The notes below the pieces were generated by a model that was not told the origin of the DNA, did not search any database, and worked only from the letters and a program-made list of their open reading frames with translations. Made by a program: the position numbers and the translations under genes. A stretch of 64,000 nucleotides of DNA from Azolla caroliniana (Eukaryota > Plantae > Polypodiophyta), in contig JBHGNT010000009.1 in NCBI GenBank assembly GCA_043228905.1, positions 16,492,001 to 16,556,000 on the forward strand. The letters run 5' to 3'. The first letter of the stretch is position 1. Every line of letters starts with the position of its first letter. Positions 10,363-61,410 of this stretch are shown here, piece by piece.

Positions 10363-12979
10363 ATAAAATAATATATCAAGATATTTATCACGTGCATAGG
10401 GCAGGATTTGAACCCTGTACCTCCACGTAGCCAAACCTCAACTTTACCATTACGCTACCTTATCGTTAGTGTTCTATAAATAGATTTAATAACTATAAGT
10501 GCTTTATTTGCGCCTACCTTTATTAAAAGGTAAATCATGTATTTTTAGAGTGCGTGAATATTTTATAGAAAAACGCAAGCGACTAAAAAGTGACTCATGC
10601 ACATCTAGCGTGCATGAGCACTATATTTAGCAAATAAAAGCAAGGATTAGAAAAGCATCACATGCACATTTAGTGTGCATGAACATATTAGAAAAAAAAG
10701 CATGTAGCTATGCTTAGTCTCTCCCATCATTACATAAGGATGGGGAGCACAATGTAATAGGTGTGTGAAAAATATTTGGGAAATTGGATATATTTCCTAA
10801 AACACCAACAATCAATAAAATATACTCGTGGGATTCACGAAGTTTAAGATAATCTATCTCTTTCAATCTAAATTCATATTCTTACATAAATATTGATTAA
10901 TGTAATACTTGTGGGATTCACAAGGTTTGATCTCTTTTCTCAATCTACTCTAATCTATTCTAAATTATTTCAATTTATTACTACGATTTAGATAAACTAA
11001 AACAATTATACTTGTGGGATTCACAAGTTTCTATATCTCTTTCTTATAATCTATTCATATTCATAACTAGATTAGCCTCAAATTCTTCCTCCTCCTAGTC
11101 CAAAACCCCGGTGGTTCCCACCCGACTCACGCAAACGATCCGGAGCCGAAAGGCACGACAACGCTCAAGCCACCCATAAGAAATTTGCAGATTGCCATCG
11201 ACTCAACTCATCGTCGGAAAAACCCAAATTTCAAGTTGGAGACCATGTATGGCTCTTACGACGTAATGTGAAGACCACTAGGCCTTGTAACAAGCTAGAT
11301 TATCAACGCCTTGGTCCATATTTAATCACTAAACAGATCAATGGAGTTGCTTTTCAACTCGATCTCCCTCCTCATATACGTCTTCACCTACTGTTCCATG
11401 TCTCACTCTTGGAACCTTATACTTCAAACTCTATTCCATATCGCATTGTTCCCCGTCCACCTTCTATTGAGCTTGATGAAGGCCCTGAATATGAAGTAAA
11501 ATCCATTTTGGACTCCAAAGTTGTGAAGAACAAATTGTATTACTTTGTTGATTGGCTGGGTTATACACCTACGGATCGAACGTGGGAGCCAGCTGAAAAT
11601 CTCAATAATACCAAAGAACTGGTAGCTGAATTTCATCAACGATATCCAAATAAGCCAACTCCTAGTTCATGCATTGCGACTCGTGGAACTCATCGTCAAA
11701 GGAAGGGGATAATGTCATGAACATATACCAAAACTCAAAGACTTGTAATAAGGATTCGAACCCATGACCTCGTCAAAGATAATGTGTAACTTCAACCACT
11801 AGGATACATCATATTACATTTATTAAAATGTAAATTCTTATATTAGATCATGAAGAAATATATCTAATAGTGTGAAGCGTTGCCACCGCATAGGCTAACG
11901 CATTATTACCAAGTGTCATGCTTGCATGAATGCCAAGTGGCATGCTTGCATGAATGCCAAGTGGCATGCTTGCATGAATGACAAATGGCGAGCATGCGTG
12001 CCTATGAGATGGCGAGCATGCATGTATCCAAAGCATGCTATATAAACATATAGCGAACTATTGATGAACCATTCCGGTTCAACGCCAGTCTTCGGCGTAC
12101 TCTTGTAACCCTTGTTCTCATTGGTAATACATGTTCAATATCGTATTTCTCTCTCATTCCTCTCTTATTTTCTATTTCTCATTCTTTTCTTCATGTTAAA
12201 CTTGTCTTTGGCTACGGCCCTGACAACTAGTCTCATTTTCTTGAACTTGATAGGAGGGAGATTACCCGATCTATGTTTAAGCCTCCTTGTACAGTCTCTT
12301 TATAATAATCCTTCCTAACTAATGGGAAAGTAGCTTCATTTTGGGAAGAAAAATAAAACTATTCATATATTGGTGGTATTGGAGGGTGTCTTTGCTAAAT
12401 GTGGGTTGTGTGAGGGTCATGTTGTGGGGATTCTGTCGAGTAATTCTGTGTTAAGGCTTTGTTGCTTCATCTATACATGTTTTCTTGTAGCCATGCAAAG
12501 TGGCTTGTAACATATGAGTTGTATATTATCCTATGTACTTTTTCTTAACTAATGGAAGTAGAATTTTTTTGGAAAAAATAAATAAAATAAAAAATAACAC
12601 TTAAAGCATTAGTGAGCTTCCAATGATTGTCCTAGTTGAGAAAATCTAGAAGAAGAAGCTATAAAAAGGGTAGAAGATGTTGTGTTGTGATGTGTGCGAA
12701 GTGACAAACTTGCGAAAAATGTAAGTTGCACAAAGGCTCAAGATTCTAGTAGAAATGGATATTAAGGACAAAATGAAACTGAAACAACAAAAAGCATGTC
12801 TCTAATGGTAAACCTAGCAATTAATAACAAAACTTCAAAGGGTTCAAAAACTTAATGATATTTTTATTATAAGAGGAAATATACCAGAGTCAAAACTAAA
12901 CGATTTGTTGAAGACATGCTTTGAATGACATGTTTATATACTAGTAGCATGTGCCTGTTGGATATTTGTAGGGTCATTA

Positions 12980-14432: not shown

Positions 14433-14464
<32 letters not shown>

Positions 14465-14468
<4 letters not shown>

Positions 14469-14831
14469 ATTATCGTCTTTGAAGGTCAAATTTGACCTAT
14501 GAGACCAAAAATATTACATTTCACGTGATATGTGTAAAAGTGAGTAGTGACTCTAGATGTTCAAGAACTTTACCGATGAATGTTGCAATCGAGAGTGCAC
14601 ATTGTGGTTGTGAGAGGAATTCATGCAAATGAATAGACACCTCGAAACGATGTGATGTAAGTCATTTAAAGCCCACCACGCGTCACACAGGCACTATTAA
14701 AAGCACACGACGTGGAAAGCATGGTTGAATATGATCAAAGGCAGAGCATTGTATCAAAGTGTGATACTCAGACTCACAAACTTGTTTAGGGCAAAGTGTG
14801 CATAGCCGACCACTCTCATCACTTGTGCCCT
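14465..14831 (-). mobile_element. LINE 3' fragment inside the (GA)n tract of E's LTR
   Basis: Homologous to the LINE 3' end at ~41619-41925; flanked by GA repeats. Confidence 0.88.
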
Positions 14832-15388: not shown

Positions 15389-18300
15389 TGAATAATGCCA
15401 TATGCCTCTATTTATAGTATTGTCAGGAATACTCCTGAAGTTTCTAGAATTTTCCAGCGTAATCTGGAATATACATGAATTTCCTATAGTGAAATAATAA
15501 ATGAAAATAATACATTTTATAATATAATGCATGGTTTAATGGTAAGTTTTCAACCCTTATAACACAAGGTCATGGGTTCGATTGCTTTTGGATGGAGCCA
15601 TACCATGCCATATCATGAAAGTATCCCCCCCTTTAAACGACGAGTGTTACGAGTCGTCTTTGATTGAGAACCTGGTTTGTCTGGATATTGGCAATGGAAG
15701 TCTTCAAGAAGAGCTTGAGCATTCGCCAAATTCATCATTGGATCCCAAGTACGCTCGCTTGGACTATATCCTAGCCAATTGACCAAATAATAGAGCTTGT
15801 TGTGAACCATCTTGGAATCGAGGATGACAGCAACCTCGCACTCAGGTCTATCTTCAAGTTCGATCGGGGGTGGAGGTGGTGTAATAAGATCTAGGATTGT
15901 GTTGTCCTGATAGGGTTCTAGAAGAGAACTATCAAATACCGGATGTATCCGTAGTTGCGGAGGTAGATCAAGGTGAAAACTGACATCATTAATTTTTCTG
16001 TTAATACGGAAAGGCCCTAACCGTCGATAATCCAGTTTGTCACACGGTCGAGTAGTCTTGATGTGCCGTCGTAATAGCCATACTCGATCTCCAATAACAA
16101 AACAAGATGGAAGCCGATGACGATCCACATAGTCCTTCTCTATTTGTTGGGTGCAATGTAGATGGATAGATAGCTCTGCCTGAATTCATCGTAGCCGCTC
16201 CGAATGATCCTCTACACTAGGAATTGAGGGTAACTCAGGAGTTTGTAACACACACCAACGAAGATGATAACCGGTATAAGCGTAGAATGGTGTAACCCTA
16301 GTAGAGGAGTGGATAGAATTATTATAAGCAAATTCAGCAAACTGTAGAATATCTGCCCAATCATCTTGTTGATAGCTTAGGAAACACCGAAGATACTATT
16401 CCAGTGTTTGATTGGTACGTTCTGCTTGTCCATTTTATTGGGGATGATAGTCAGAGGAGAGATTGCAAGTGACCTTGAGCATTTTGAAGAGATGCTTCCA
16501 AAATTTAGAGACGAAAAGAGGTCCATGATCACTGATGATACTGTCAGGAAGACCATGATGCCGAAATACTTCACGCATAACAATTCCTGCAGTTTCTTCA
16601 CTAGTGATTTCTTTAGTACAGGGCACGAAATGTGCCATCTTAGTATATCAATCTACCACTGTTAAGATCGCATTGAAGCCCTTCGAATCCGGAAGGTCTG
16701 CGATAAAATCTAGAGAAATAGATTGCCACGGTTTGCTTGGGATCGGTAATGGCTCCATCAAACCATATGGATGATGTCTAGGCATCTTCGCTCTGCAACA
16801 TGTATCACATGTCCAAACATAGTCTTCGACAAATCTTTACATATGGCGCCACCAAAATGATCATTGTACTAAATCCAACGTTTTAGTACTACCAAAATGC
16901 CTGGCTATGTATGTGTCATGACAATTTTGTACTGTGTCATGACAATTTTGTACTATTCGAAGGCGACAAGAACCATTGGGAACATACAAAAGTTTCTTAA
17001 AGAAGAGTAATCCATCATGACATTTGAATTGTCGATAATCCATACCTGGTTGTTATGACCGTGAACAAGATGCTCGAGAGGGATCGATTTTATCTAGAAT
17101 AGCTTGAGCAAAAACATTGCACATCTCGCAACGAGCGTGAAGTTTGCCACTCTAACATAGTTTGGACTTTAGGTGGATCCATAGATATGCCTTCCGAGGA
17201 GATGACATAGCCTAGAAATTCCACTTGGTTACAATCAAAACTACACTTTTCCAATTTTGCATAAAGACCATGTTCTCGTAGTCATCTTAGTACAAATAGT
17301 ACATGAGAATCATGCTCCTCCTGTGTCTTTGAATAAATGAGCAGATCATCCAAGTAGATGATCAAACAAATGTCCAAAAGATCTCGGAATATATAATTTT
17401 CCATGTGTTGGAAGACTGTTGGTGCATTGGTGAGGCCGAATGACATAACTGTATACTGAAAGTGCCCATATTGGGTGCGGAAAGTTGTTTTCCATTCGTC
17501 TCTCGGTCGAATCCGTACGAGGTTATATGTTCCTCGTAAGTCAATGTTTGTGAAAACTTTGCGCCATTAATCCTTTCTAAAAGACTCGAGATTAGGGGAA
17601 CCTATTCCTGATGGTGACCTTATCCAAGCCACGATAATTCACGACTAGACGAACTTAGCCATCTTTTTTCTTGAAGAAGAAAATAGGTGCGCCGGCTGGA
17701 GATTTCGAATGTCGAATGAACCCGTTTGCCAAATTTTCCTCTATGTAGGCTCGAAGAACTTCAATCTCGGTTTGTGACAAGTTGTACATCGATCCCCATG
17801 GTGGCTCTTTTCTTGGTTGTAAATCAATGGGACAATCATACGATCGATGGTGAGGAAGAGTACTAGCTTTTACCTTATCAAAAACGTCAGTGTAATGATG
17901 ATACTTCTTTGGAAGTTGAATTGTTGACTCCTCCTTAGCGGTGTTGGAAGGTTTCACTGATATTGCGAATACAAACATTGATTCCTTGCGTCATTCCTCC
18001 CGCAATTGATGTAACAAAATTGTTGAAATCTTATGAGTAGATCCTCGAGGTTGTCGATACCTGATTTCTCTTGTTCTCCAATCTATGTCCAGATTGTGTA
18101 ATTCAAACCATAGTAACCCCAAAACAATTGGATACTCTAGACTACTAATTATATTAAATGATACAACACATGCCAAATTATTTAGGACAACACTAATCGG
18201 CTCTAACTCTTCTACGATATTTCCGGAAGCAATGCGGCGACCATCAATGACTGCTACAGAAGCTGGGCAAGGGAGTTTTCTTAGGGATATCTATTGAGCT

Positions 18301-18886: not shown

Positions 18887-19803
18887 TGTCGTGCCTTTTG
18901 GCGCCATATCGTTGCGTGAGTCGGGTGGGAACCGCTGGGGTTTTGGACTAGGAAGAGGAGAGTTTTAAGGCTAATAAGAATATAAATATGTTGTAAGAAA
19001 GGGTTATAGCAAACTCGTGAATCCCACGAGTGTATTGTATTAGATTAATCAATATGAATATAAGAATATAAATTTGGGTTGAAAGAGAATGATATAGAAT
19101 CCTCGTGAATCCCACGAGTATAATTTATTAATTTGTGTTTTTTAGAATTTCCAAATATTTTTTCACACCTTTTACATTGTGCTCCCCATCCTTATGTAGT
19201 GATGAGGGAGTCTTAGTAATCCATGCTTTTTTTTTCTAACTATAGACTCCATGCTTTCCCTATAGATAGACTATATGCTTTATCTAAAGTGATCATGCTT
19301 TTTCTAACTTGTGCGATTTTTTTTTTATCGACTATAGCGTTCATGCACGCTAGATGTGCATGTGTAGCTTTTTCTTTTAGCATGCGTTTTTATTTTAACT
19401 AAAGTTTATCCTACGTGAACTTACCTTTCTATGTGGGACATCTACTTTTTAACACTAATGAAATGCTAGTGTAATGCTTTATCTAAAGTGATCATGCTTT
19501 TTCTAACTTGTGCGATTTATTTTTTATCGACTATAGCGTTCATACACGCTAGATGTGCATGCGTAGCTTTTTCTTTTAGCATGCGTTTTTCTTTTAACTA
19601 AAGTTTATCCTACGTGAACTTACCTTTCTATGTGGGACATGTACTTTTTAACACTAATGAAATGCTAGTGTAATGGTAAGGTTTCACATTATTAACATGG
19701 AGGTGCAAGGTTTGAATCTTGCCCTATGCATGTATTATTTATTTTGACATTTTCTTCTATTTCTTCATATTTACTAAAACGTTACTTTATAAGTTTTTCA
19801 CGT
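18887..19803 (-). mobile_element. LTR of a diverged relative of element C, with an internal ~199-bp tandem duplication
   Basis: Reverse complement of the C LTR end (CCCACCCGACTCACGCAA...GGCACGACA); duplication units start at ~19275 and ~19474. Confidence 0.88.
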
Positions 19804-20542
19804 CTTTGAAGGTCAAATTTGACCTATGAGACCAAAAATATTACATTTCACGTGATATGTGTAAAAGTGAGTAGTGACTCTAGATGTTCAAGAACCTTAC
19901 CGATGAATGTTGCAATCGAGAGTGCACATTGTGGTTGTGAGAGGAATTCATGCAAATGAACAGACACCTCGAAACGATATGATGTAAGTCATTTAAAGCC
20001 CACCACGCGTCACACAGCCACTATTAAAAGCACACGACGTGGAAAGCATGGTCGAATATGATCAAAGGTAGAGCATTGTATCAAAGTGTGATACTCAGAC
20101 TCGCGAACTTGTTTAGGGCAAAGTGTGCATAGTCGACCACTCTCATCACTTGTGCCCCAACGCCCTATCTCACATTGCAATGCATGTGAGCTAAGTCGCA
20201 TGGAAGCAACGGTTTGAATGGTAGATAATGGTATGGGCTCTAACATGTATCAATGTGTACGATTTCCCCGTTCCGCAAAGAATATGGTTTTGTAGTTAGG
20301 TGCAGCATGTGTAGTATAATGTGTGAAGTGTGAGCCTCCACAGTTGTCCCATGTCATGATACATTGGCGTTGCAAAAAGGCCTCATTTATAGAGGAATCT
20401 AATGACGCATCATGAAGCAAGTGTCTCGCATCCCATCTACCAAACCATTTTTCTATATCTTGCATCCAATCGGAACACAAAATTTTGCTTTTATGTGTCT
20501 TTTGTATCTGTTTGCTTGCTTCCCACGCAATTCTAGGAAGTC
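19801..20542 (-). mobile_element. LINE 3' fragment inside the middle LTR of the E/F tandem
   Basis: ORFs 20010-20480 match the LINE C-terminus; carries the same foreign insert as the 14465 copy. Confidence 0.9.
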
Positions 20543-27259: not shown

Positions 27260-29463
27260 ACGGAAAGGACCTAATCGTCAATAATCCAATTTATCGCATG
27301 GTCGAGTAGTCTTGATGAGTCATCGTAATAGCCGTACCCGATCTCCAATGTTAAAACAGGATGGAGGCCGATGACGATCCGCATAATCCTTTTGTGTTTG
27401 TTGAGCTTGATGTAAATGGGTAGATAGGTCTTCTTGTATCTTGCGTAGCCATTCCAAATTATCCTCTACACGAGGATTTGTGGGTAACTCCGGAGTTTCG
27501 AATACACACCACCGAGGATGATAGCATGTGTAAGCATAAAATGGTGTAACCCTCGTCGATGAGTGGATAGAGTTATTATAAGCAAATTCAGCAAAGTGGA
27601 GAATATCCGCCCAATCATCTTGTTGATAGCTTAGAAAACACCGAAGATATTGTTCAAGCGTTGATTTGTTTGTTCTGCTTGTCCGTCTGTTTGAGGGTGA
27701 TAGCCGGACGAGAGGTTACAAGTGACCTTGAGCATTTTGAAGAGATGCTTCCAGAATTTCGAAACGAATTGAGGACCACAGTCGCTAATGATACTATATG
27801 GGAGCCCATGATGCCGAAATACCTCACGCATGACAATTTCGACGGTTTCTTCACTAGTGATTTCCTTAGTACAAGGCAGGAAATGTGTCATCTTAGTATA
27901 TTGATCTATGATAGTTAAGATCTCATCGAATCCCTTTGAAATTGGAAGATTTGTGATAAATCTAGAGAAATGGACTACCACGGCTTGCTTGGAATTGATA
28001 ATGGTTCCAATAAACCATATGGATGATGCCTTGGCATCTTTGTTCTACAACATGTATCACATGTCCGAACATAGTCTTCGATAAATTGTTGCATATAAGG
28101 CCACCAAAATTATCGTTGTACTAAATCCAACGTTTTAGTACTACCAAAATGCTCAGTTGTATATGTGTCCTGACAATTTTGGACTACTCGAAGGCGACAA
28201 GAACCATTGGGAACATACAAGATTTTCTTAAAGAATAGTAGTCCATCATCGCATTTGAATTGTCGATAGTCCATACCTGGTTGTTGCGATGTGAACAAGA
28301 TGCCCGAGAGGGATCAATTTGCGCTAGAATGGCTTGAGCAAAAGCGTTTATCTTCAAGTCTTCATGTATGGTATTGATAATGCAGGAATCCAATGGAGTG
28401 TCAAAACCCCATGTTGCTTGCAATCGGGATGGTCCCAGGATTACTTGCTTTTGATTATCGAATGTTGTATCACTAGGATGAGGTGCTAGATATGAGCGTT
28501 GCGATAATGCATCTGCCTTTCCTTGTTGCATCCCAGGACGGTATGTAATTTTGAAGTTGAAACCAATGAGGAATTGGGCCCATGGAGCTTGTCGTCGATT
28601 TAATACATGAGCATTCTAGAAGTAGGCAAGATTTTTGTGATCACTGAATATGGTGACTTGATGATAAGATCCCTCTAAAAAGTGCTTCCATTGTGCAAAA
28701 GAGTCCACTATTGCTAGTAGTTCCTTGTCATGTATCTCGTATTTTATTTCGGCGGCGTCAAACTTGCGCAAGTGGAAAGCCACAAGATGTAGTTTTTCAT
28801 CATTGCCTTGTTGTGACAGAATGCTACCAAGGGAGAAATCTGACGCATCTGCCTCAATGATGAACAGTTTTTCCATATCAACATGAGCTAGAATAGGAGT
28901 TGATATAAATGCTTTTTTAAGACTCACAAAATCCATGTCCGGTTCCTTAGACCACACAAATGACTGTCCCTTCTTGGTAAGCTGTGTGAGAGGCAAAATA
29001 AGCTTTGAGTAGTCCTATATAAACTTGCGGTAGAAATTTGCGAAGCCTAAAAAACATTGCACATCTCGCAATGAACGTGGAGTCTACCACTCTACCATAG
29101 TTTTGTCCTTAGTTGGATCCATAGAGATGCCTTCCGAGGAAATGACATAGCCTACAAATTCCTTCTGCTTCCACCCAAAACTACATTTTTCCAGTTTTGC
29201 ATAAAGACCACGTTCTCGAATTCATTTTAGTACTAATAGTACATGAGAAGCATGCTCTTGTTGAGTCTTCGAATAAACTAGTAGATCATCAAACATATAT
29301 CCAAGAGATCTCGGAATATATCATTTGCCATGTGTTGGAAGACTGTTGGCGCATTGGTGAGATCGAATGGCATAACCGTATACTCGAAATGCGCCAGTCT
29401 TAAGCCTCCTAGTTGTTCTTGTATGTTTCTTCATAAAATATAATATACTTCTTGTTGTCATCA

Positions 29464-29508
<45 letters not shown>

Positions 29509-29512
29509 TCTC

Positions 29513-29632
29513 AGCACAACCTAGTGGTAAGTTGTTGTGCTACTATTACTTATGTCTTGGGTTCGATTCTCAACTTACTCATATCCTCTGGTCATATTTG
29601 ACCTCCGAAGACGATAATATAATCTATCTATC
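29513..29632 (+). mobile_element. Putative tRNA-derived SINE with a LINE-derived 3' tail, inserted in (TC)n
   Basis: A-box-like CAACCTAGTGG at 29517-29527 and B box GGTTCGATTCT at 29560-29570; tail GGTCATATTTGACCTCCGAAGACGATAATATAATCTATCTA equals the LINE 3' end; TC repeats on both sides. Confidence 0.75.
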
Positions 29633-30003
29633 TCACTCTCTCTCGCTCTCTCGCTCTCTAATGATTCTCACACACTCTTTCCCTTTTTAGTACGAATCCT
29701 CATTCTTCTCCTCTATCTTTAATACTAATTCTCCTTGCCTCTAATATTATCCCTGACAGTTTGAACCGAATTGGTTCTCAATAATGCCATGTGCCTCTTT
29801 TTATAGTGTTCTTAGGACTATTCTTGACCTTTCTAGAATGTTCCAGAGAAATCTAGAATATACATGGATTTCCTAGGTGAAATCATAAATAAAAACAATT
29901 TTTTTATATTATAATGTATAGCTTAATGGTAGGGCTTCAATCCATGTGACACAAGGTTATGGGTTCAAATCCTTTTGAAGCCATACCATCCTATATCATC
30001 ACA

Positions 30004-38100: not shown

Positions 38101-41100
38101 TCTGACGCTGACTAGACATTGACGGCCAGAAAAACAGACAACGCTGGAAAGACACGGCCAGATGCACCAGACATGGTCAACCGGATAGACACTATCGAAA
38201 CGGAACGAGGCAACCAAACAAGTTGGATTTCACAAGCACAGAGAAAGACGAATGGACGGGCCAACAGGACGCATACCGACTCAAGTGACACGACTGAAAA
38301 GCAACCGGAACGACGGCCAGACAGTGGCCGGAAGCTGGCCGGAATAGTCAAACAGTGGCTGGAGCAGCCGAAGCGGCCGGAGAAACGGACTGATGACCGG
38401 GAAGACGAAACGGATGCACGGCTGGAAGACAACGGACAGACATCCAGAGAGTGGCCGAAATGCATAGAAGCAGCCAAAGTGGTTGGACAACGGCGGAAGC
38501 ATAACTAGTGCAGCGCCTAGATAGGCAACCGAACAAGGACGGCTGGAGATGGAGCCAAAGACAAAGATAGAGATGCAGACACGGACGCAGACAGCCAACA
38601 TAGGCAATGGACATCGATGGCGATGGCGATGGCCAAATGGGCCAATAGAGACAACGACAACAACGGAGATATCCGGACAGTAGCCAAAGAATGGGGGAAG
38701 AGCAACTGGACAGGCCCGACAGACATAGAGACGGGAAATGAAAATGGCTAAACATATGAGCAAATAGCGAATGGCAGGACAAAAACAACAAGATGAATGG
38801 TTGGACCGGCTAGAATGATCGAATAATGGTCGAATAGAGGCGACCGAATGAACGGACGGACACATCCAGATGAACGGACAGACACATCTAGATGGACGGA
38901 GATAACTGGACTGACCGGACAACGAGAGGACAACTAATGGTCGAACGACGACCAAGCGCATAGATAGGGAAACCGGAAATATGTGGCCAAACAAGCATAA
39001 CACCCCGGAACGGAGGCAGCCAGACCAGACTAGATGGGACGGACAAACGAAGGACGTCGGATAATGACGAAAATGGAGACGACCGGATTGACGGCTAAAC
39101 AACAACCGGAATGGCCGACGAATGACAACGAATGCCAGTCGGACGTTGGCAACGGGAACGGACAGATGAAGGGTTGGCGACGATGACAGAAGACAAACAA
39201 TCAGATAGATAACCGACAAAGATTGACTGTGGCCGAATAGACAGCCAATTCAACAGCGGCCAAACCAACAACTGGAAGGCACAGAGACAGTCAGACAAGG
39301 GCGAAACAGTGGGGCGGAAAGCGGCCGAACAACGGAAATACGGCAGCCGGAGTGGCTACCGGATAGCAGAATGACGACAAAGATGGGCGGTGACGGCGAT
39401 GGCAACGACGAACAACAACAGTGACAAAGACGAACGAAGCAACAGAGATGGACGACAAACAAAATAGAGAAAACAGAAAGAAGAAAGAAGAAGAGAGAAG
39501 AGCAATGCAGAGAAGAAGAAGAATAAGAGTGTTAGGGTACAAGATGTATGAAGAGCAATGCGGTCGCCGGAGTGGCGACCGGATAACAGAATGATGACAA
39601 AGATGGACGGCGACGGCGATGGCAACGATGAACAACAACAGTGACAAAGACGGATGAAGCAACAGAGATGGACAACAAACAAAACAGAGAAAACAGAAAG
39701 AAGAAAGAAGAAGAGAGAAGAGCAATGCAGAGAAGAAGAAGAATAAGAGTGTTAGGGTATGAGATGTACGAAGAGCGAGGGTGGAATGTTATAATGTTGT
39801 TTATGTGTATGTGTAAATGTGTAAGTGTAATTGTGAGTGTGAGTAATTACGTATGTGTACACATGCACACATGTGTGTATGTGGACGGATACGAGGAGGT
39901 GTGAGTGAGCGATTGGTGTGAATGTCCGAGTATCCAACTAGACTTTCTGTCCATTTGTGAACAAGGTGGTGCCTACGTTGTTGGTGTCGAGGATGAACAT
40001 CCTCATGTTCCGGCGCCCTTGCGCGATGATCCGGCTCTCTTCCTCAATGAAGCACCCGAGATGCGTAAATCGCACCTACATTCCCTGGTCGATGATCTAC
40101 CCAACCAACAGCAGGTTCTTTGTGATTGTCGGCACGTGAAGCACATTGATTAGCTTCCCTTGTCCGACATGACTTAACAGAACTTCACCGACATGCACTA
40201 TCGGGTGAGGAGTGTCGTCTCTGGTTTCGACAACTACCGGTTGCTCCGGCGTTTCCAAAAACGTGAACCACTCTTCGTGGCTTGTCATGTGGTTAGATGC
40301 TCCGGAGTCAACGTACCATACTTCCTTTGATCCGATAGGGGTCTTCTTCATTATGTTCGCCTTTTGTTCATCACAAAGTTTGGCCCTTTTCTGGTCTTCC
40401 AGTTTCAGATACTTCTGATCCTTCGGCGTAGTGTGAACTTTGCCGGTTCCCTTGTCCAGCCTTATCGGATCTAGATTTATCCGAATCGGCGTGCTTCTTC
40501 TAGCACTCGCTCTCTCGGTGGCCCTTCTTGCAACAATACCAGAATTCCATTTCGTTCTTTCATTGCCGGTTTTCGGCGCCACTTTGACCCCCTTGCTTGT
40601 GGAGGGTTCAAAACTGTTGTCGGCACTATCTTTGTGCCTCTGGTTCTGCTCTTGCCGACCGCCTATATTGCGTGCCGACCCACCTCGTCCTCCACACCCA
40701 TGGGGCCGATCCGCCTCTATGTACAACATCTGGTTGTCTGATTAAGTGGCCCTTAACCCACTCACATGGTTTTCTTCTAACATGAGCATCGATTGCAGGT
40801 CGAAGAAGGACGATGGATTCTCCCAGGTGCAAATTGTCATCGGGATTGGCCCATACCGGTGTGCTAGACCATCGAGGCAGATCTGGACCATCTCGTCTTC
40901 ATCCACCATCACATTGATGGACCCGAGTGTGTCCTAGATCTCCTTGATCTTGGTGGTGTGGTTAGTGACCGACATGTCTTGTTGTTGAATATTGTTGAGC
41001 TCTCGCCGGAGCTACAACTTTCGAGCCGTGGTACTTGCTGAGAAAATCTTCCAGAGATTTTACCAAGCCTCCTTCGGTGACATTGCATCTCTGATGTAGC

Positions 41101-41380: not shown

Positions 41381-41597
41381 ACATGGATCCGGAAGGAGTT
41401 CGACCGATTCCGGTATGAACCAGCAAATAGGAACATATTAGTAAATATGTTCAGACATGACCGTTGAGGTCATATTTGTAAATAGCCCCAAAGTTTTATA
41501 AGTATAAATATAACTAGGGCAATATTGTTATGGTAGATCATTATCATAGTAGTTGTTATTATCCTTCTTGTTGTACAAAGAGAGAGAGAGAGAGAGA

Positions 41598-43197
41598 TAG
41601 ATAGATAGATAGATAGATTATATTATCGTCTTCGGAGATCAAATATGACCTATGAGACCAAAAATATTACATTTCACGTGATACGTGTGAAAGTGAGTAG
41701 TGACTCTCGATGTTCAAGAACTTTACCAATGAATGTTGCAATCGAGAGTGCACATTGTGGTTGTGAGAGGAATTCATGCAAAGATTGGGCTCGATCGAAG
41801 AGATGTGGAAAGCATGGTCGAATATGATCAAAGGCAGAGCATTGTATCAAAGTGTGATACTCAGACTCGCGAACTTGTTTAGGGCAAAGTGTGCATAACC
41901 GACCACTCTCATCACTTGTACCCCAACGCCCTGTTTCACATCGCAATGCATGTGAGCTAAGTCGCATGGAAGCAATGGTTCGAATGGCAGATAACGGTAT
42001 GGGCTCTAACATGTATGGATGTGTACGATTTCCCCGTTCCGCAAAGAATATTGTTTTGTAGTTAGGTGCAACATGTGTAGTATAATGTGTGAAGCGTGAG
42101 CCTCCACATTTGTCCCATGTCATGATACATTGGCGTTGCAAAAATGCCTCATTTACAGAGGAATCTAATGATGCATCATGAAGCAAGTGTCTCGCATCCC
42201 ATCTACCAAACCATTTTTCTATATCTTGCATCCAACCGGAACACAAAATTTTGCTTTTATGCGTCTTTTGGATCTTTTTGCTTGCTTCCCACGCAATTCT
42301 AGGAAGTCGATGTGAGGGACTTTTTTGAACCTTAAGCATGTATTCAACAACCCTTTCCATGGCCATGATCTCAATGGGAAGCGATCCCGTCTCAAGGAGG
42401 AGGAGGGTGTAGGGCGTTTGTTTCTTAACTTGTAGAAACTTGGTAAGAAAATGCTTTTGGACATTTTCAAACTCTTTCCACATAGACTTAGGGATGCTAC
42501 CGCCCCATACTTCCACCCCATAGAGAAGAACTGGTGTCACCAAAGTGTCAAAAAGATATTTCTTGAGGACCCAACACTTAATATCTCCAAGATTGCATGT
42601 GTTCTCAAATGCATAGTATGCTCGTTTGCCCGCCTCTAAGCGGCGTGTAGCACATTCATTCCATCTATGATTTGAAGGAACTTCAAGGCCAAGATATTTG
42701 AAGCTTTCCACACATTCAAGTGGCTCATTGTTGTACATAATGCATGGTTTATCTCTTTTTTGGCTCTTCACAAGCATAATCTTTGTTTTAGAGCTATTGA
42801 CACTTAATTTAGTATGCATGCAAAATTTTTCCAATGCCTTCATAAGCTTTTGTGCATCTCCTAAAGTATTTGCAAAAAGCACTACGTCATCTGCATATAG
42901 CAAAAGCATAATCACAACATTCCCAATGGCAACTTCTTCAACACATTCTTCCTTTGCAAACTTGGTAACCATTTCTTCCAATTCATCAATGCATAGACCA
43001 AATAGTGTTGGTGAGAGTGGGCATCCTTGCTTAACACCAATAGTGCTTTTGAAAAAATCTGAAAGTTTATCTTTCATGCGCACACAACATATAACCTTCT
43101 CATAAATTCGGGAAATTGCAAGCATATATTCACTTGGCACCTCAAGTTCTTCCATTCGCCTCCAAAGATGCTCACGAGGTACCATATCAAAAGCTTT

Positions 43198-43200
<3 letters not shown>
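41598..43200 (-). mobile_element. 5'-truncated LINE (RTEX-like) with open RT C-terminal half and C-terminal zinc finger, inserted in (GA)n
   Basis: KAFD..GVKQGCPLSP..YADD..FKYLG; LSSH.L..ETGRW..CTLC..E.EYH...C; (TATC)n tail; the paralogous LTR at 59175-59195 shows the empty (GA)n site. Confidence 0.93.
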
Positions 43201-43232
<32 letters not shown>

Positions 43233-45228
43233 CAGAAAGTTTTTCTGTTGTAACTACCGGTTGGCGAAGATAGAGCTCGAGGTAGTTGCCTCTGAGCCTC
43301 ACATTGTTGTTGTACCTCTCCTCTATAGTGATCCTATTCGGAGTTCCAAGAACTCCTATGGTTTTTCCCGATTAGGGTTTTCCACGATAATATTATGTGT
43401 CGTCTTATTTCTGTTTTCTGTTTCTTCCATTGTGTGATCGGGACTCGATTGTGGCCGAGCACTATTTTTATCAATCTGGTATCAGAGCATGGAAGATCCA
43501 TTCGGCAGCATGTTCAAGCTCATCGGCTCCAACTACCCAGTGTGGAAGTCGAAGATGAGGGACATGTTGGTGGTCAAAGATCTCTGGATCCCGGTACAGT
43601 TTGGAGACAAAAGACCAGACAAGATCGATCCCACGACCTGGGAGGTAATGCACATGAAAACGACGGCATACATTCGATGCTTCATCGACATGAGCCTGTA
43701 CAATAACTTTAATGAAGAGAATAAGGTCAATGAGCTCTAGGAGAATATCAACACGATGTTGGAGAACAAGAATGCCGTAAACCGGGTTTCGATATTCCAA
43801 AAGATAGTGAGGCTCTAGTATCAAGACAACACCAGCATGGTAGAGCATATGAACACCTTCCAGGGGTTGATAAACTAGACTACCTCGCTCGAAGTACCGT
43901 TAGTCGACGATGTACTAGCACTATTATTGCTCGGATCCCTTCCGGATAGTTAGGAGACATTGGTTGTCACTCTAGGCAATGTTGGACCAGAAAGAAAGAA
44001 CTTATCCCTGGCGAGCGTGAAGTCAAGCCTGCTAAACGAAGAAGCTCTCTGGAAGGACTGAACCGATCCGAAGGCCTTGGTTACGGAAGACGACCATAAC
44101 CGGGGAAGGGGCCGGAATCGGAGTCCCTAGAACCGGGACAAATCAGGGACGAGGTTGAAGTCAAGGGGGAGGCCCACTTGCTTTTATTGCGGAAAGCCGG
44201 GGCACTTCCAGAAGAATTGCTGACACTTCCGAAAAGCAAAAGGGGGAACCGACAATCCGGAACCAAAGAAGATTTCAAAGAGAAGAGGAACGACGAAAAT
44301 CACAACAAGTGATGAAGAATTGTTGCTAATCATCGAGGAGAGTGAGCTACATCTTGTTGGCGACGAAACGACATGGGTGGTCGACTCTGGAGCGTCATTC
44401 CACCTGACCCCCGAACGAAAGTGCTTCTCATCCTACAGAGCTAGAGATCACGGTTGTGTCAGAATGGGAAATGAAGGTGCATGCCGAATAGTCGGCATAG
44501 GAGATGTGTGGTTGATGACATCAACCGGGTGCAGACTATTGTTGAAGGATGTCCGACACATTTCGGAGGTTTGGTTGAACTTGATATCATGCGGTTGGCT
44601 AGATGACAAAGGCTACACAGGTAGCATCCGGAACGGAGTAATGAAATTCAGCAAAGGAAGCTTGATCATGGCCCGAGCCCGGAAGATCAACACATTTTTC
44701 CTAATGCACGCCCGGATATGCCGGGAAGATGTCATGAGATGACAAGACTCGAACCCATGACCTTATGGTATATGGGTCGAGCTCTTAACCATCTCACCAT
44801 CTATTGTAATTCATAGAATATTATTTTCATTTATGTTTTATTATAAGAAAGTAATGTATATTCCAGATTTCTCTGGAACATTCTAGAAGCTTCAGGATTA
44901 TTCCTGAGAACACTATAAAAGAAGGCACTAAGCATTATGTTGAACCAAATTGGTTCAACACCAGTCTTAAGCCTCTTAGTCGATTTGTACTTATCTTTCA
45001 TATAATATAAGAGCTGCTGTCATCATCCTATTTTCTCTCTCTCTCTCCTCTTCTCACTTCCTCTCTCTCGGGAATCTTACGCAGTCCCGTCCTCTTAGTA
45101 CTAATAGTACTACTCTTCTTAGTACTAATTCCATCTCTGTTTTAGTACTATTCCTGACAGTTTGAACCAATTTTTTCCTCTAGCCTACTTGTCACTCTCC
45201 CTCATCCTCCTACCCTTTCCCCTATACT

Positions 45229-49955: not shown

Positions 49956-52900
49956 GGGGGAGATAGTGTCATGAGATGGCAAGACTCGAACCCATGACCT
50001 TATGGTATATGGGTCGAGCTCTTAACCATCTCACCATCTATTGTAATTCATAGAATATTATTTTCATTTATGTTTTATTATAAGAAAGTAATGTATATTC
50101 CAGATTTCTCTGGAACATTCTAGAAGCTTCAGGATTATTCCTGAGAACACTATAAAAGAAGGCACTAAGCATTATGTTGAACCAAATTGGTTCAACACCA
50201 GTCTTAAGCCTCTTAGTCGATTTGTACTTATCTTTCATATAATATAAGAGCTGCTTTCATCATCCTATTTTCTCTCTCTCTCTCCTCTTCTCACTTCCTC
50301 TCTCTCGGGAATCTTACGCAGTCCCGTCCTCTTAGTACTAATAGTACTACTCTTCTTAGTACTAATTCCATCTCTGTTTTAGTACTATTCCTGACAGAAG
50401 AAGTGAAAACGTGGCATTCGACACTGCCGGTGAGTTGTGGCACAAGAGGTTGTGTCACATGAGCCAAAAGGGAATGTAGAGACTTGCTGAATATAACCTC
50501 ATTTTGGAGGTGAAAGATGTGTAGCTTGAGTAGTGCACCGATTGTTTGGCCGGCAAGCAAAACCGAACCTTTCTCCGATCCTGACCACCGTCAAGACGGA
50601 ATGCACCGCTAGAACTTGTGCATACCGATGTATGTCAAGTGGACACGAAGTCACCATGCCAGATCGCAGTACTTCGTGACGTTCATAGATGACCATAGTT
50701 GGAAGCTATGGGTCTCACCCTTGAAGACAAAAGACCAGGTATTATCCATCTTCAAGGAATTCCACGTGAGACTGGAAAGGGAAACCGGCCGGAATCTGAA
50801 GGCGGTTCGAGCGAACAACGGAGGCGAATACCAGGGGCAGTTCGAGGAGTACTACCGATTGAAGGGAATCCGGCTCGAGTTTACGGTGTTGAAGACACTA
50901 GAGCTGAATAGATTGGCCGAAACGATGAACCGGACTGTGACGGGGAGAATCTAGAGCATGTTGGCACATGCTAAGCTGCCCAAGACATTTTGGGCTAAGG
51001 CGCTAATGACAACGACGTACGTGATAAACAGATCGCCCTCAACACCCTTGGATGGAGACACACCACAGAGAGTATGGACCGGTAAAGACGTGTCTTACCG
51101 GCATCTAAAGGCGTTCGGTTGTCTTGCCTATGTGCATGTAGCAAAAGACAAGAGAGAAAATTTGGATCCGAAGTCCCGACCATGCATATTCCTTGGGTAC
51201 GAGGATGATGAGTTTGGCTACCGAGCGTGGGACTTGGTCAACAAAAAGGTCTTCCGAAGTCGAGGCATAATCTTCATAAAAGACAAGACCATTGCCGACT
51301 GGGAGTCAGAGAAGAAAATAGCGGAATATGGGTCGACTGACAGAGATCGGTCGGAAGATACAAGGACCCATCCGGTCGGAAGCCGGATGACACTCGAAGA
51401 ACCGGCCAGATTCAGACAAGAAACCGAATCGACCGAAGAAGAAGAATTGGACACCGGAACTAGACAAGATCCCAAATCAGATTCTGATGAAGAACAGACA
51501 AAGGAGTCGGTGGTCGAAAACCAAGGATAGAAATACCCTCTAAGTGGGAGAAAGGCCCCCCGAAGATTTCCGAATGTAGAGCATGTTTTACAGACCGACG
51601 AGGGGAAGCCGGAAAGCTTCGAAGAAGCAAAGAAAGACACCCACAACCAAGTGGTTAAGTGCTATGTAGGATGAGATGGATTCCTTGCATGAGAACCACA
51701 CATACTAATTGACGAAACTGCCGAAAGGGAAGAGAGCGCTACAGAACAAGTGGGTGTACAAGCTGAAACCGAGAGACGCCAGAAATCCACTGAGGTACAA
51801 AGACCGCATTGTGGTGAAGGATTCCCAGCAGAAAAAGGGAGTGGACTTTGACGAGATGTTTGCCCCGGTAGTCGAGATGACATCCATTCAGACTGTGTTG
51901 AGCATTGCGACAAGCATGGATCTCAAGGTCGAGCAGCTAGTCGTCAAGACAACGTTCCTACACAGTGACCTCGAAGAAGGGATCTACATGCAATAGCCGA
52001 AGGGATTTGTCAAGAAAGGGAAGGAGCACCTAGTGTGCTTATACGGACTAAAGCAAACTCCTCGGCAATGGTATCGGAAGTTCGACTCCTCAGGACCGAC
52101 CAAGGATACCACAAGATACAGGCCGACCACTACGTGTTCATGAAGAAGTTCAACGGAGGCGACTTCCTGCTACTCATGTTGTATGTGGATGACATGTAGA
52201 TCGTGGGACTAGACCGAATCAAAATTGGGAATCTGAAGAAGGCCATGAGTCGGACCTTCTCAATCAAAGATTTGGGTCTTGCGAGACAAATATTGGGATG
52301 CACATAGTCCGGGACCGGACAAAGAAGCTATTGTGGTTGTCACAAGAGAAGTATGTGACGAAGCTGCTCCAATGATTCAGCATGACGGATGCGAAGCTGG
52401 TCGGATCGACACTTCCGGCAAATTGCAAGTTATCTGGAAAACAGAGCCCAAAGACTAAGGCAGAGAAGTCGGAGATGATGAAGGTACCATACGCCTTTGT
52501 CGTCGGAAGCTTGATGTACGCAACGGTGTGTACCCGACCAAATATCGCATATGTTGTCGGAGTGGTAAGTAGATTCATGAGCAATCAGGGAAGAGAACAT
52601 GTTGTCAAGTGGATACTCCGGTACCTGAAAGGCACCTCAAGCATGTGCCTCTAGTTCGGCTCCGGTAAACCCCTATTGGAAAGCATTATGGATTCGTACA
52701 TGTCGGTTGATGCATATACCATCCGATCTACATCCAGATATGTCATGACATATGCAGGGGGAGCAGTATTGTGGCAGTCGAGGCTACAAAAGTCTGTTGC
52801 ATTGTCAACAACGAAAGCGGAGTACATGGCGGCTGTAGAAGCTGACAACAAGGTAATCTGGATGAAGGACTTCATCGGAGAGCTAGGGATTCAGTAGGAG

Positions 52901-58764: not shown

Positions 58765-61019
58765 ATTGGACATGCCGACCAAGGTGTTGTCAGCTGACAA
58801 GCTGGAAGTGTGTCGGAGACAAATCGGACTGGCGAGAGATCCCATGCCAGAGTGAAGGGGGAGGTTGTTGGGAAACAAGTTCCTCCGGATGGGATTCGGG
58901 TGAGAACCGGACAAGCTGGATCAGACGAGGCGAAGGAAGGAACCGGACCGGATGGATCCGGAAAGGTATCCGGATACCGGATCAGATGGATCTAGAAGGA
59001 GTCCGGCCAATTCTGGTATGAACCAGCAAATAGGAACATATTAGTAAATATGTTCAGACGTGACTATTGAGGTCATATTTGTAAATAGCCCCAAAGTTTT
59101 ATAAGTATAAATATAACTAGGGCAATATTGTTATGGTAGATCATTATCATAGTTGTTATTATCCTTCTTGTTGTACAGAGAGAGAGAGAGATACAGAAAG
59201 TTTTTCTGTTGTAACCACTGGTTGGTGAAGATAGAGCTCGAGGTAGTTGCCTCTGAGCCTCACATTGGTGTACCTCTCCTCTATAGTGATCCTGTTCGGA
59301 GTTCCGAGAACTCCGGTGGTTTTTCTCGATTAGGGTTTTCCACGATAATATTTTGTGTCGTCTTATTTCTGTTTCTGTTTCTTCCATTGTGTGATCGGGA
59401 CTTGGTTGTGGCCAAGCACTATTTCTATCAACACATAAGTACTCCGTATCGGAATACAATCCAAAGGTGTGGTTGGAGAGATGGTAATAATCTGCATATT
59501 CAATCCGTCAATTTGTACAACACAGAATCGTCCATGCATAAGATTAGACATTCAAGTACACGAGATACCAAGTACACAAATCTTCCAAATATAATATATT
59601 ACTTGCGTATCCAACAATACAATCCAGACTCCTTATATAGGTAGCCGGTTCTGATACAAAATGGTGTTCATCGGGATTTGCACATCTTTCTAGATTCTTC
59701 ACCCCTTGACATAATAACTCTTCTAATCTATTTTTATTACAACGTTTCGCTTCTCCTAATATTTCTAATTACTACATATCCTCTAATATTCATCCCACTT
59801 TCAGTTCATACTGTATCCGGTTCACACTGCTTCCAGATTCCGATTCCCTCGACTTCCTTCCGGCTTTCCTCTTCTCGGCTCTTCTCCGATTCAAGCTTCA
59901 TTGGGCAACAATATGGCCTCTACACAATAGATTGTTGCCCATGATGGCATAAACAACCAACATGATGTTCTCTCCATGAAGTAATTATGTGAGTTCCTTT
60001 GTGTGATTTTGGTGAGAAATGGGTTATGAATTTGCATGATCAAATACAATAGAAATGATGACCTTCCATTGGGCAACACTTGAGCTTCATGCCAAGTTCA
60101 ACAAGAAATAAAAGTTCTCCCATGGTCATCCTCCACGGGGCCCAAACCATTGTGGAGGGGCCAAAGCCAAACTATAGTGTGGAGGCATCCATATGAAAGA
60201 ATTCATCTTTTTTCTTTGTAGTCAACCTTTGTGGGTGGCAATTGAATAGAGATATCCACACAAAGGAACTATTTTGTTTTAGTAACATGCTTTTTACTAA
60301 TGGGAAACCTTAAAATGAGGTGAAAACACGCAAAGAATAAAGAGAAGTATAGAAGTGTTGATTAGACACTAAAGAGCTTAGGGGTACTCAAAGTAAAGAG
60401 TGTAAATTTGCAATGTGATGTCTCTAAGTTGCAGACAATCAAACAAAGGTTTCCAGAGGGATTGCTTAAAGAAGCTAACTTCATGCAATTGGTTTCGATC
60501 GAAGTTTTCTTTCCTCCAAATCACTTTCTTTTTGTCTTGATCGGAAATCGACCACATTCATCAAAATTAGTGTAGAAATTTGAGTAGCAAGTCATAGAGA
60601 AACAAATCAATCTCATAGTCATGACTTGGGTGGTATGATTGGGCTCATACAAAAGAACGTTTGTGCAAGTTTCGAGAGGACACAAAAGTTTTATGTTGTG
60701 TGCTACGGACTTGGCCATGGTATGATGTTAATAGTTTTGACATTACCTTATTTATATACATGAGGACCTGGTATCTCAACTACATACATTCCATCATTTC
60801 ACAAAGTAATCACATATTCTTCTTCGTCGTCCAAGAGAATGAAGCGGTGTTGGGAGAGGCACATGAAATGAGGTTACCAAAATGGGTGATTATGATTACT
60901 ATTGTACACGTATTTTTCGTAGCTGGTTAGGCAAGAGTGTATGGGAGGGTTGAATATGGCCAGTTGAACGAGCCAGGATGGCGATGGTGACGGCAACTGG
61001 TGACGTTTTACATGCATTT

Positions 61020-61181
61020 ATTTATATACAATATAGATACATACATACACACATGCATGTATTTGTGTGTGTGCGTGCGTGTGTGTGTATATATATATAT
61101 ATATACATGATACAAAATTCAAATACACAAACACATGGATTTATTTATATACAAATACAAATACAAGCACAAAATACAAAT

Positions 61182-61215
<34 letters not shown>

Positions 61216-61410
61216 ACACGATACAAATACACACACAAACACATGCATTTATACAAATACAAATACATACACAAACACATGCATTTATACAAATACAAAT
61301 ACATACACAAATGTATGTATTTATATACATACACTATACAAATACATACACAAACACATGCGTTTATACGAATACATTACAAATACAAACACATGCGTAC
61401 ACACACATGC
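61020..61410. repeat. (TA)n / TACA / ATACAA-type low-complexity microsatellite region upstream of UAP
   Basis: Direct inspection. Confidence 0.9.

Follow-up and report, generated by a model that had tools for sequence, protein, structure and literature searches.

In the stretch of Azolla caroliniana DNA analysed here (64 kb, hereafter the window), a 120-nt insert at 29513-29632 combines a 5′ head carrying RNA polymerase III (Pol III)-type promoter motifs with the 3′ end of a LINE residing in the same genome. With moderate confidence, we read this insert as a SINE copy in which a degenerate tRNA-like Pol III head is joined to the last ~43 nt of a fern LINE of APE type that homes to (TC)n. It is from SINE/LINE pairs with a structured 3′ tail in common that "stringent" template recognition has classically been deduced. 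The original prediction had proposed such a pair at this position. It stands as regards the identity of the tail, the use of the LINE target in the LINE orientation and the repetition of the head, while neither a second copy of head plus tail nor a tRNA derivation of the head was obtained.

The insert and its host LTR

Reading of the sequence from 29200 to 29950 showed that a non-repeat block of 120 nt (29513-29632, forward strand) interrupts the TC tract of an F-type Gypsy LTR. The upstream target microsatellite at 29467-29512 (+), which belongs to the TC tract of the LTR, consists of (TC)19 followed by CCTCTCTC, while the TC-rich tract downstream at 29633-29659 (+) represents either the remaining target or a microsatellite target-site duplication. 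Both LTRs of chromovirus E, an intact element, have an uninterrupted TC tract at the homologous position (LTRs at 44730-45160 and 49967-50397), and two further copies of the F-type LTR in the window hold a LINE fragment instead of the 120-nt block in this tract. Therefore, the block is an insertion, and the predicted ~120-bp insert in the (TC)n tract of the F LTR could be confirmed from both the reading of 29513-29632 and the uninterrupted E LTRs. Furthermore, LTR copies without the insert exist in public Logan contigs, which skip from 29441 to 29662 and from 29424 to 29669. The insert has TC tracts on both sides, as LINE copies do, although an exact duplication is undefinable inside a microsatellite. 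One reading frame is open across the insert and gives a 40-aa translation.

The host is the 3′ part of the F-type LTR, located at 29394-29760 (+) and ending in TGACA, which is inverted with respect to its own 5′ part at 29761-30003. This inverted segment with the insert (29397-29760) adjoins a truncated RT region. In contigs from three public runs, positions 29392-29396 are joined to 29761-29764 on opposite strands, which corresponds to the normal contiguous LTR; hence, the LTR copy carrying the insert is a rearranged one.

A 3′ end in common with the resident LINE

The LINE-derived core of the tail at 29590-29624 (+) starts with a GGTCA-TATT-TGACC hairpin (29590-29603) and is followed at 29625-29632 (+) by a (TATC)2 terminal repeat, the same as at LINE 3′ ends. 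The core differs from the LINE at 41616-41650 (-) by 1 mismatch in 35 and from a LINE fragment at 14463-14497 (-) by 3 mismatches, with 0 chance matches expected in both cases. In a BLAST alignment of 29590-29632 with the LINE copy at 41596-43200 (-), 42/43 positions are identical (E about 1e-17), in line with the prediction that the last ~40 nt, hairpin included, match the LINE 3′ terminus with about one mismatch. In addition, L001, a LINE-containing contig of a public assembly, has at 1334-1375 a tail identical to that of the insert (42/42). The homology between insert and LINE begins exactly at the hairpin, 23 nt past the LINE stop codon, and this 3′ end is common to the insert and a LINE of the same genome. 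The insert ends with the genuine 3′ terminus of the resident LINE.

Nine tails were aligned, namely those of the insert, two LINE copies from the window, L001, L002 (Adiantum nelumboides), L003, L006, L008 and L009, with the LINE lineages behind them being 70-94% identical. The 5-bp GGTCA-TATT-TGACC hairpin pairs in 45/45 cells of this alignment, and its changes comprise one compensatory exchange of U-A to C-G (GGCCA...TGGCC in L003) and two G-U pairs. The hairpin is thus conserved in all tails compared. With so few sequences, the covariation is suggestive but not significant, since 51 of 500 shuffles do equally well.

The partner LINE is present in the window as a 5′-truncated copy at 41596-43200 (-) with (GA)n on both sides, in which a TGA stop codon (41674-41676) and a 3′ UTR of 58 nt including the tail (41616-41650) are followed by (TATC)n. 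An empty paralogous site, (GA)7 at 59178-59191 (+), is the counterpart of this filled site. Two further 5′-truncated fragments are located in LTRs: the one at 14463-14831 (-) lies in a homologous LTR, within its (TC)n tract and in the same orientation with respect to the TC strand, and the other at 19801-20542 (-), the tail of which is cut after the hairpin, adjoins the (CT)n (20543) of a third LTR copy. Thus, three insertions in the window struck one and the same LTR tract: a LINE fragment at 14463-14831, a LINE fragment at 20542 and the insert at 29513, all of them co-oriented.

Outside the window, a near full-length relative (L003:5863-10320) is preceded by (TC)41 and followed by (TC)n, and it contains an upstream 245-aa ORF1-like ORF, an APE domain and an RT. 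Moreover, (TC)n follows six of the eight intact LINE tails (among them L001, L008 and L009), the exceptions being L002 and L006. The pair of empty and filled sites, the flanks of the L003 relative and the (TC)n after these six tails lead us to regard the LINE as a fixed-orientation (TC)n-homing element. Apart from the exceptions L002 and L006, it has what characterizes a microsatellite-specific LINE, namely a single repeat type, a fixed orientation and an intact empty site. The insert is located in the LINE's own target, (TC)n, and in the LINE orientation.

Over 1.3 kb, the LINE contig L001 and the window LINE share 94% identity, and the best named relatives of the RT/C-terminal ORF at 41674-43302 come from the fern Adiantum nelumboides with 72-81% identity. 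The window LINE ORF carries a CX2CX9HX4C motif at its C-terminal end. A sequence search of the PDB gave weak matches of the LINE RT to L1 ORF2p and R2 and no match of the APE, and together the Pfam and PDB searches did not yield a decisive clade placement of the fern LINE.

Between the LINE fragments at 14474-14830 and 19801-20157, identity amounts to 97.5%; an internal segment of ~80 nt and three tail changes are common to both, while their 5′ ends differ. They lie in LTR copies flanking one internal region. This looks like the result of co-amplification with the LTRs of a single element, or of conversion between these LTRs.

The head, its copies and alternative origins

The head comprises the 77 nt at 29513-29589 (+) and lacks LINE homology. 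Its first 8 nt form a hairpin, AGCACAAC...GTTGTGCT, in which 29513-29520 pair with 29534-29541. The A-box-like motif CAACCTAGTGG is located at 29517-29527 and the B box GGTTCGATTC at 29560-29569, the latter within a T-arm at 29557-29573 (TTGGG-TTCGATT-CTCAA). As predicted, the two boxes are 32 nt apart, which corresponds to tRNA spacing, and the window contains their combined pattern only once, compared with 0 expected; at the motif level, the head therefore has internal Pol III promoter boxes at a tRNA-like distance. On the other hand, ARAGORN detected no tRNA in the head with either default or relaxed settings (60% thresholds), the Rfam tRNA model gave no match to it at E<=10, and its acceptor strands do not pair. 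Consequently, the description of the head as tRNA-like is kept for the promoter motifs, their spacing and the T-arm only, while the tRNA derivation is not borne out, as the head displays neither a cloverleaf nor significant similarity to a tRNA gene. When the head was compared by BLAST with the window and with nine fetched loci, all matches were at chance level.

The 120 nt correspond to 8 sampled index words of the public data, and 2-3 of these words occur in low-coverage runs from several organism labels; no run recorded as RNA contained the insert. The region 29213-29932 was compared at 85% likeness with Logan contigs from X1 and X3 (both organism A), from X2 (organism B) and from X11, possibly an RNA run; these contigs are too short for flanks, and 29455-29518 is masked as repeat. 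Many short unitigs cover the head in each of the three DNA runs (X1-X3, two organism labels), with alternative bases at 29550 and 29552 supported by 12-17 variant unitigs per run. At 29552, the majority base in X1 and X2, two of the three runs, is G, compared with A in the window. The head is a repeated, variable sequence. With respect to copy number, where the original prediction was exposed to the finding of a single-copy sequence, the Logan contigs of X1-X3 speak for repetition, yet a second copy of head plus tail was not retrieved.

The depth of the head, summed over contigs, amounts to about 1-3% of that of the tail, in which LINE copies dominate, and is similar to but no higher than that of the LTR flanks, with summed contig depth not being equal to copy number. 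As the head is no deeper than the LTR flanks and the LINE fragments look co-amplified with this LTR family, the insert may have multiplied as a passenger of the LTR. Among the loose ends listed, the one before 29590 is supported by 56-128 contigs with the LINE 3′ UTR as consensus, and the one behind 29633 reads (ATCT)n. No well-supported loose end inside the head or at the boundary between head and tail was found among the best-supported ends listed for X1-X3. As ends with only 4-6 contigs are still listed and none of them falls there, most copies of the head seem to continue in the way seen in the window. The repeated head copies thus presumably carry the LINE tail. One contig of X11 follows 29520-29556 and then continues with unlike sequence.

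Logan contigs on 29589-29644 also contain tail-to-tail tandem arrays with a period of 41-55 nt, the units of which start at the hairpin (29589-29595). These arrays suggest frequent tail-only insertions or template jumps at the hairpin.

Neither the 64-kb window nor about 60 kb of fetched fern loci contained a second copy of head plus tail detectable by BLAST, and no contig bridging head and tail in another flank was seen. The exact A-box/B-box pattern had 0 matches in JGI metagenome contigs, IMG/VR and GTDB, and the 40-aa frame of the insert had 0 matches among predicted peptides, either by word search or by exhaustive HMMER; these blanks weigh little because the metagenome, viral, GTDB and peptide collections hold little fern DNA. 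A pattern of B box plus hairpin retrieved four loci from metagenome contigs (L004, L005, L006 and L007), all of which were rejected as second copies. In L005 and L007, what appears to be a microbial tRNA gene precedes an unrelated hairpin, the similarity of L004 to the LINE tail is limited to the hairpin, and L006 has a 67-nt LINE tail preceded by a region that is non-homologous to the head. At L006:549-640, the region upstream of the tail contains the B-box-like motif GGTTCAATTCT without an A box, and this locus is either an extremely 5′-truncated LINE copy or another chimera.

If the insert is a SINE using the LINE machinery, master copies would be transcribed by RNA polymerase III from the internal A/B boxes, and without an internal T-run terminator the transcripts would extend into the flanking repeat. 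The LINE ORF2 protein would recognise the common 3′ module, composed of the GGUCA-UAUU-UGACC hairpin, the conserved ~21 nt and (UAUC)n, and the LINE endonuclease would nick a (TC)n/(GA)n microsatellite on its GA strand. Subsequent pairing of the UC-rich 3′ end of the RNA with the nicked GA strand would allow target-primed reverse transcription, and the expected outcome would be an insertion of fixed orientation with a duplication of the microsatellite target.

A different origin, which we consider possible but rather doubtful, is a one-off chimera: the LINE RT would have copied the tail of its own RNA and then switched, on the 5′ side of the hairpin, to an abundant tRNA-like Pol III transcript, so that any multiplicity of the insert would come only from the carrier LTR. 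A small-RNA-like 5′ part followed by a very short LINE 3′ end is the expected product of template switching (Buzdin 2002, Garcia-Perez 2007; reviewed in PMC4494074), and the units of the tail-to-tail tandems start at the same boundary (29589-29595), suggesting a recurrent stop or jump at the hairpin. Amplification as a passenger is plausible in the carrier LTR family, and Kojima's criteria for separating SINE families from sums of chimeras (PMC4494074) need more copies. However, the head is a degenerate variable repeat and no cellular tRNA, and the divergence point expected at its 3′ end if it belonged to another element is absent among the best-supported loose ends listed. Moreover, the insert is absent from two further LTR copies of the window.

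The separation of the head from the hairpin by TCCTCT could instead reflect two neighbouring insertions in a hotspot, in which an older head-only element ending in ...CTCATA and a 43-nt tail-only LINE fragment are separated by a TC remnant (29584-29589). Although the TC tract was hit repeatedly and tail-only or near tail-only LINE fragments exist (the 67-nt tail of L006 and the tandem tails in Logan contigs), this history demands two events within 6 nt and a head-only element that homes to (TC)n without a LINE tail; furthermore, the ends behind 29584-29590 that it predicts are absent among the best-supported ends listed. We therefore regard it as unlikely. The position inside the LTR and the depth similar to that of the LTR flanks would also fit an ancestral variable segment of the carrier LTR family, with no insertion at all. 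This last explanation is highly improbable in view of the 43-nt match to the LINE terminus (E about 1e-17) and the contigs skipping the insert, and it conflicts with the alignment of the homologous LTRs, in which this place is taken either by a continuous TC tract or by a LINE fragment.

Comparison with known systems and LTR Pol III modules

By 2012, only three tail-sharing pairs had been listed for land plants (PMC3472496): the TS SINE of tobacco with RTE-1_STu, and ZmSINE2 and ZmSINE3 of maize with LINE1-1_ZM (Ohshima 2012, PMC3472496). Similar to these pairs, the Azolla insert is short and non-coding and combines a Pol III-type head with tens of nucleotides from the 3′ end of a LINE resident in the genome, a conserved stem-loop among them. 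It differs from them in being located in a fern, in having a head too degenerate for tRNA assignment, and in being known from one complete copy; in addition, its tail ends in (TATC)n and it sits in the microsatellite target of the LINE. We found no description of a fern SINE/LINE pair with a common tail in the literature searched, and the repeat table of C-fern lists LINEs including RTE-X but no SINEs (PMC6890710). A new SINE/LINE pair is therefore probable in this fern, and microsatellite homing would be its uncommon property if the family is confirmed.

The Kibi, Koshi and crocodilian Tx1 families are microsatellite-specific LINEs (Kojima & Fujiwara 2004, cited in PMC4494074). The fern LINE resembles Kibi of fish in its insertion into (TC)n with a fixed orientation (PMC4494074). 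Those families are animal elements of the Tx1 clade; the fern LINE has an ORF1-like ORF, an APE, an RT and a CX2CX9HX4C motif. The insert also resembles L1 chimeric retrogenes such as U6-L1, with a small-RNA-like 5′ part, a 5′-truncated LINE 3′ end and target-primed insertion. However, those retrogenes are one-off products containing genuine cellular small RNAs, whereas the 5′ part of the insert is a repeated degenerate sequence.

Helenus and TRIMp3 are LTR elements with a tRNA-like Pol III module, for which a SINE insertion into the LTR was proposed as origin (Kojima 2024, PMC10886601). The insert likewise is a tRNA-like Pol III module inside an LTR, but its host is a degenerate LTR of an autonomous-type Gypsy element, and the other LTR modules in the window are not derived from it. 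With the insert, a Pol III-type module has landed in an LTR, and PMC10886601 is a precedent for the general idea. Tentatively, and with clearly less confidence than we place in the SINE copy itself, we propose that ferns may possess a SINE family with microsatellite homing, mobilised by a (TC)n-specific LINE that acts through the conserved 3′ hairpin module, and that the landing of these SINEs in the TC tracts of LTRs would be a live example of how Pol III modules are built into LTR retrotransposons, as in the proposed origin of TRIMp3.

If the SINE inherits the homing of its partner, the pair would offer a compact testable system for RNA-tail recognition, reduced to a 5-bp hairpin, about 21 nt and (UAUC)n. 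Such inheritance would also account for the way in which (TC)n tracts in LTRs turn into insertion sinks in giant fern genomes. If the insert is a one-off chimera, it would still be a snapshot of the birth of a SINE.

The original prediction had further considered such SINE heads as a source of the Pol III modules in LTRs, an idea that finds no support at this locus, where head and modules have promoter boxes alone in common and the modules are without LINE tail. The B-box motif GGTTCGANTC occurs 5 times in the window compared with 0.5 expected, and besides the one in the insert, the four others lie antisense in Gypsy LTRs (145-154, 11753-11762, 44746-44755 and 49983-49992, all on the reverse strand). 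Further tRNA-like LTR modules are located at 15569-15583 and at 29917-29977 (+), the latter with an Rfam tRNA score of 18 bits, which is below threshold. What the head and the LTR modules have in common is limited to 15-17 nt around the B box and an octamer of the A box, and the LINE tail is absent from all LTR Pol III modules in the window. As promoter boxes alone are common to both, a direct derivation in either direction was rejected.

In general, tRNA-like A/B modules at tRNA spacing are present inside the LTRs of several Gypsy families of the window, mostly in antisense. These modules resemble those of the Helenus/TRIMp3 type, with the difference that their hosts are LTRs of autonomous-type elements. 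Sub-threshold Rfam matches to mir-297, mir-3149 and mir-1277 at 61000-61410 and 39801-39871 lie in tandem repeats and are most likely low-complexity artefacts; those to mir-297 and mir-3149 (61.0-61.4 kb), which score far below the gathering threshold in a repetitive stretch, were dismissed.
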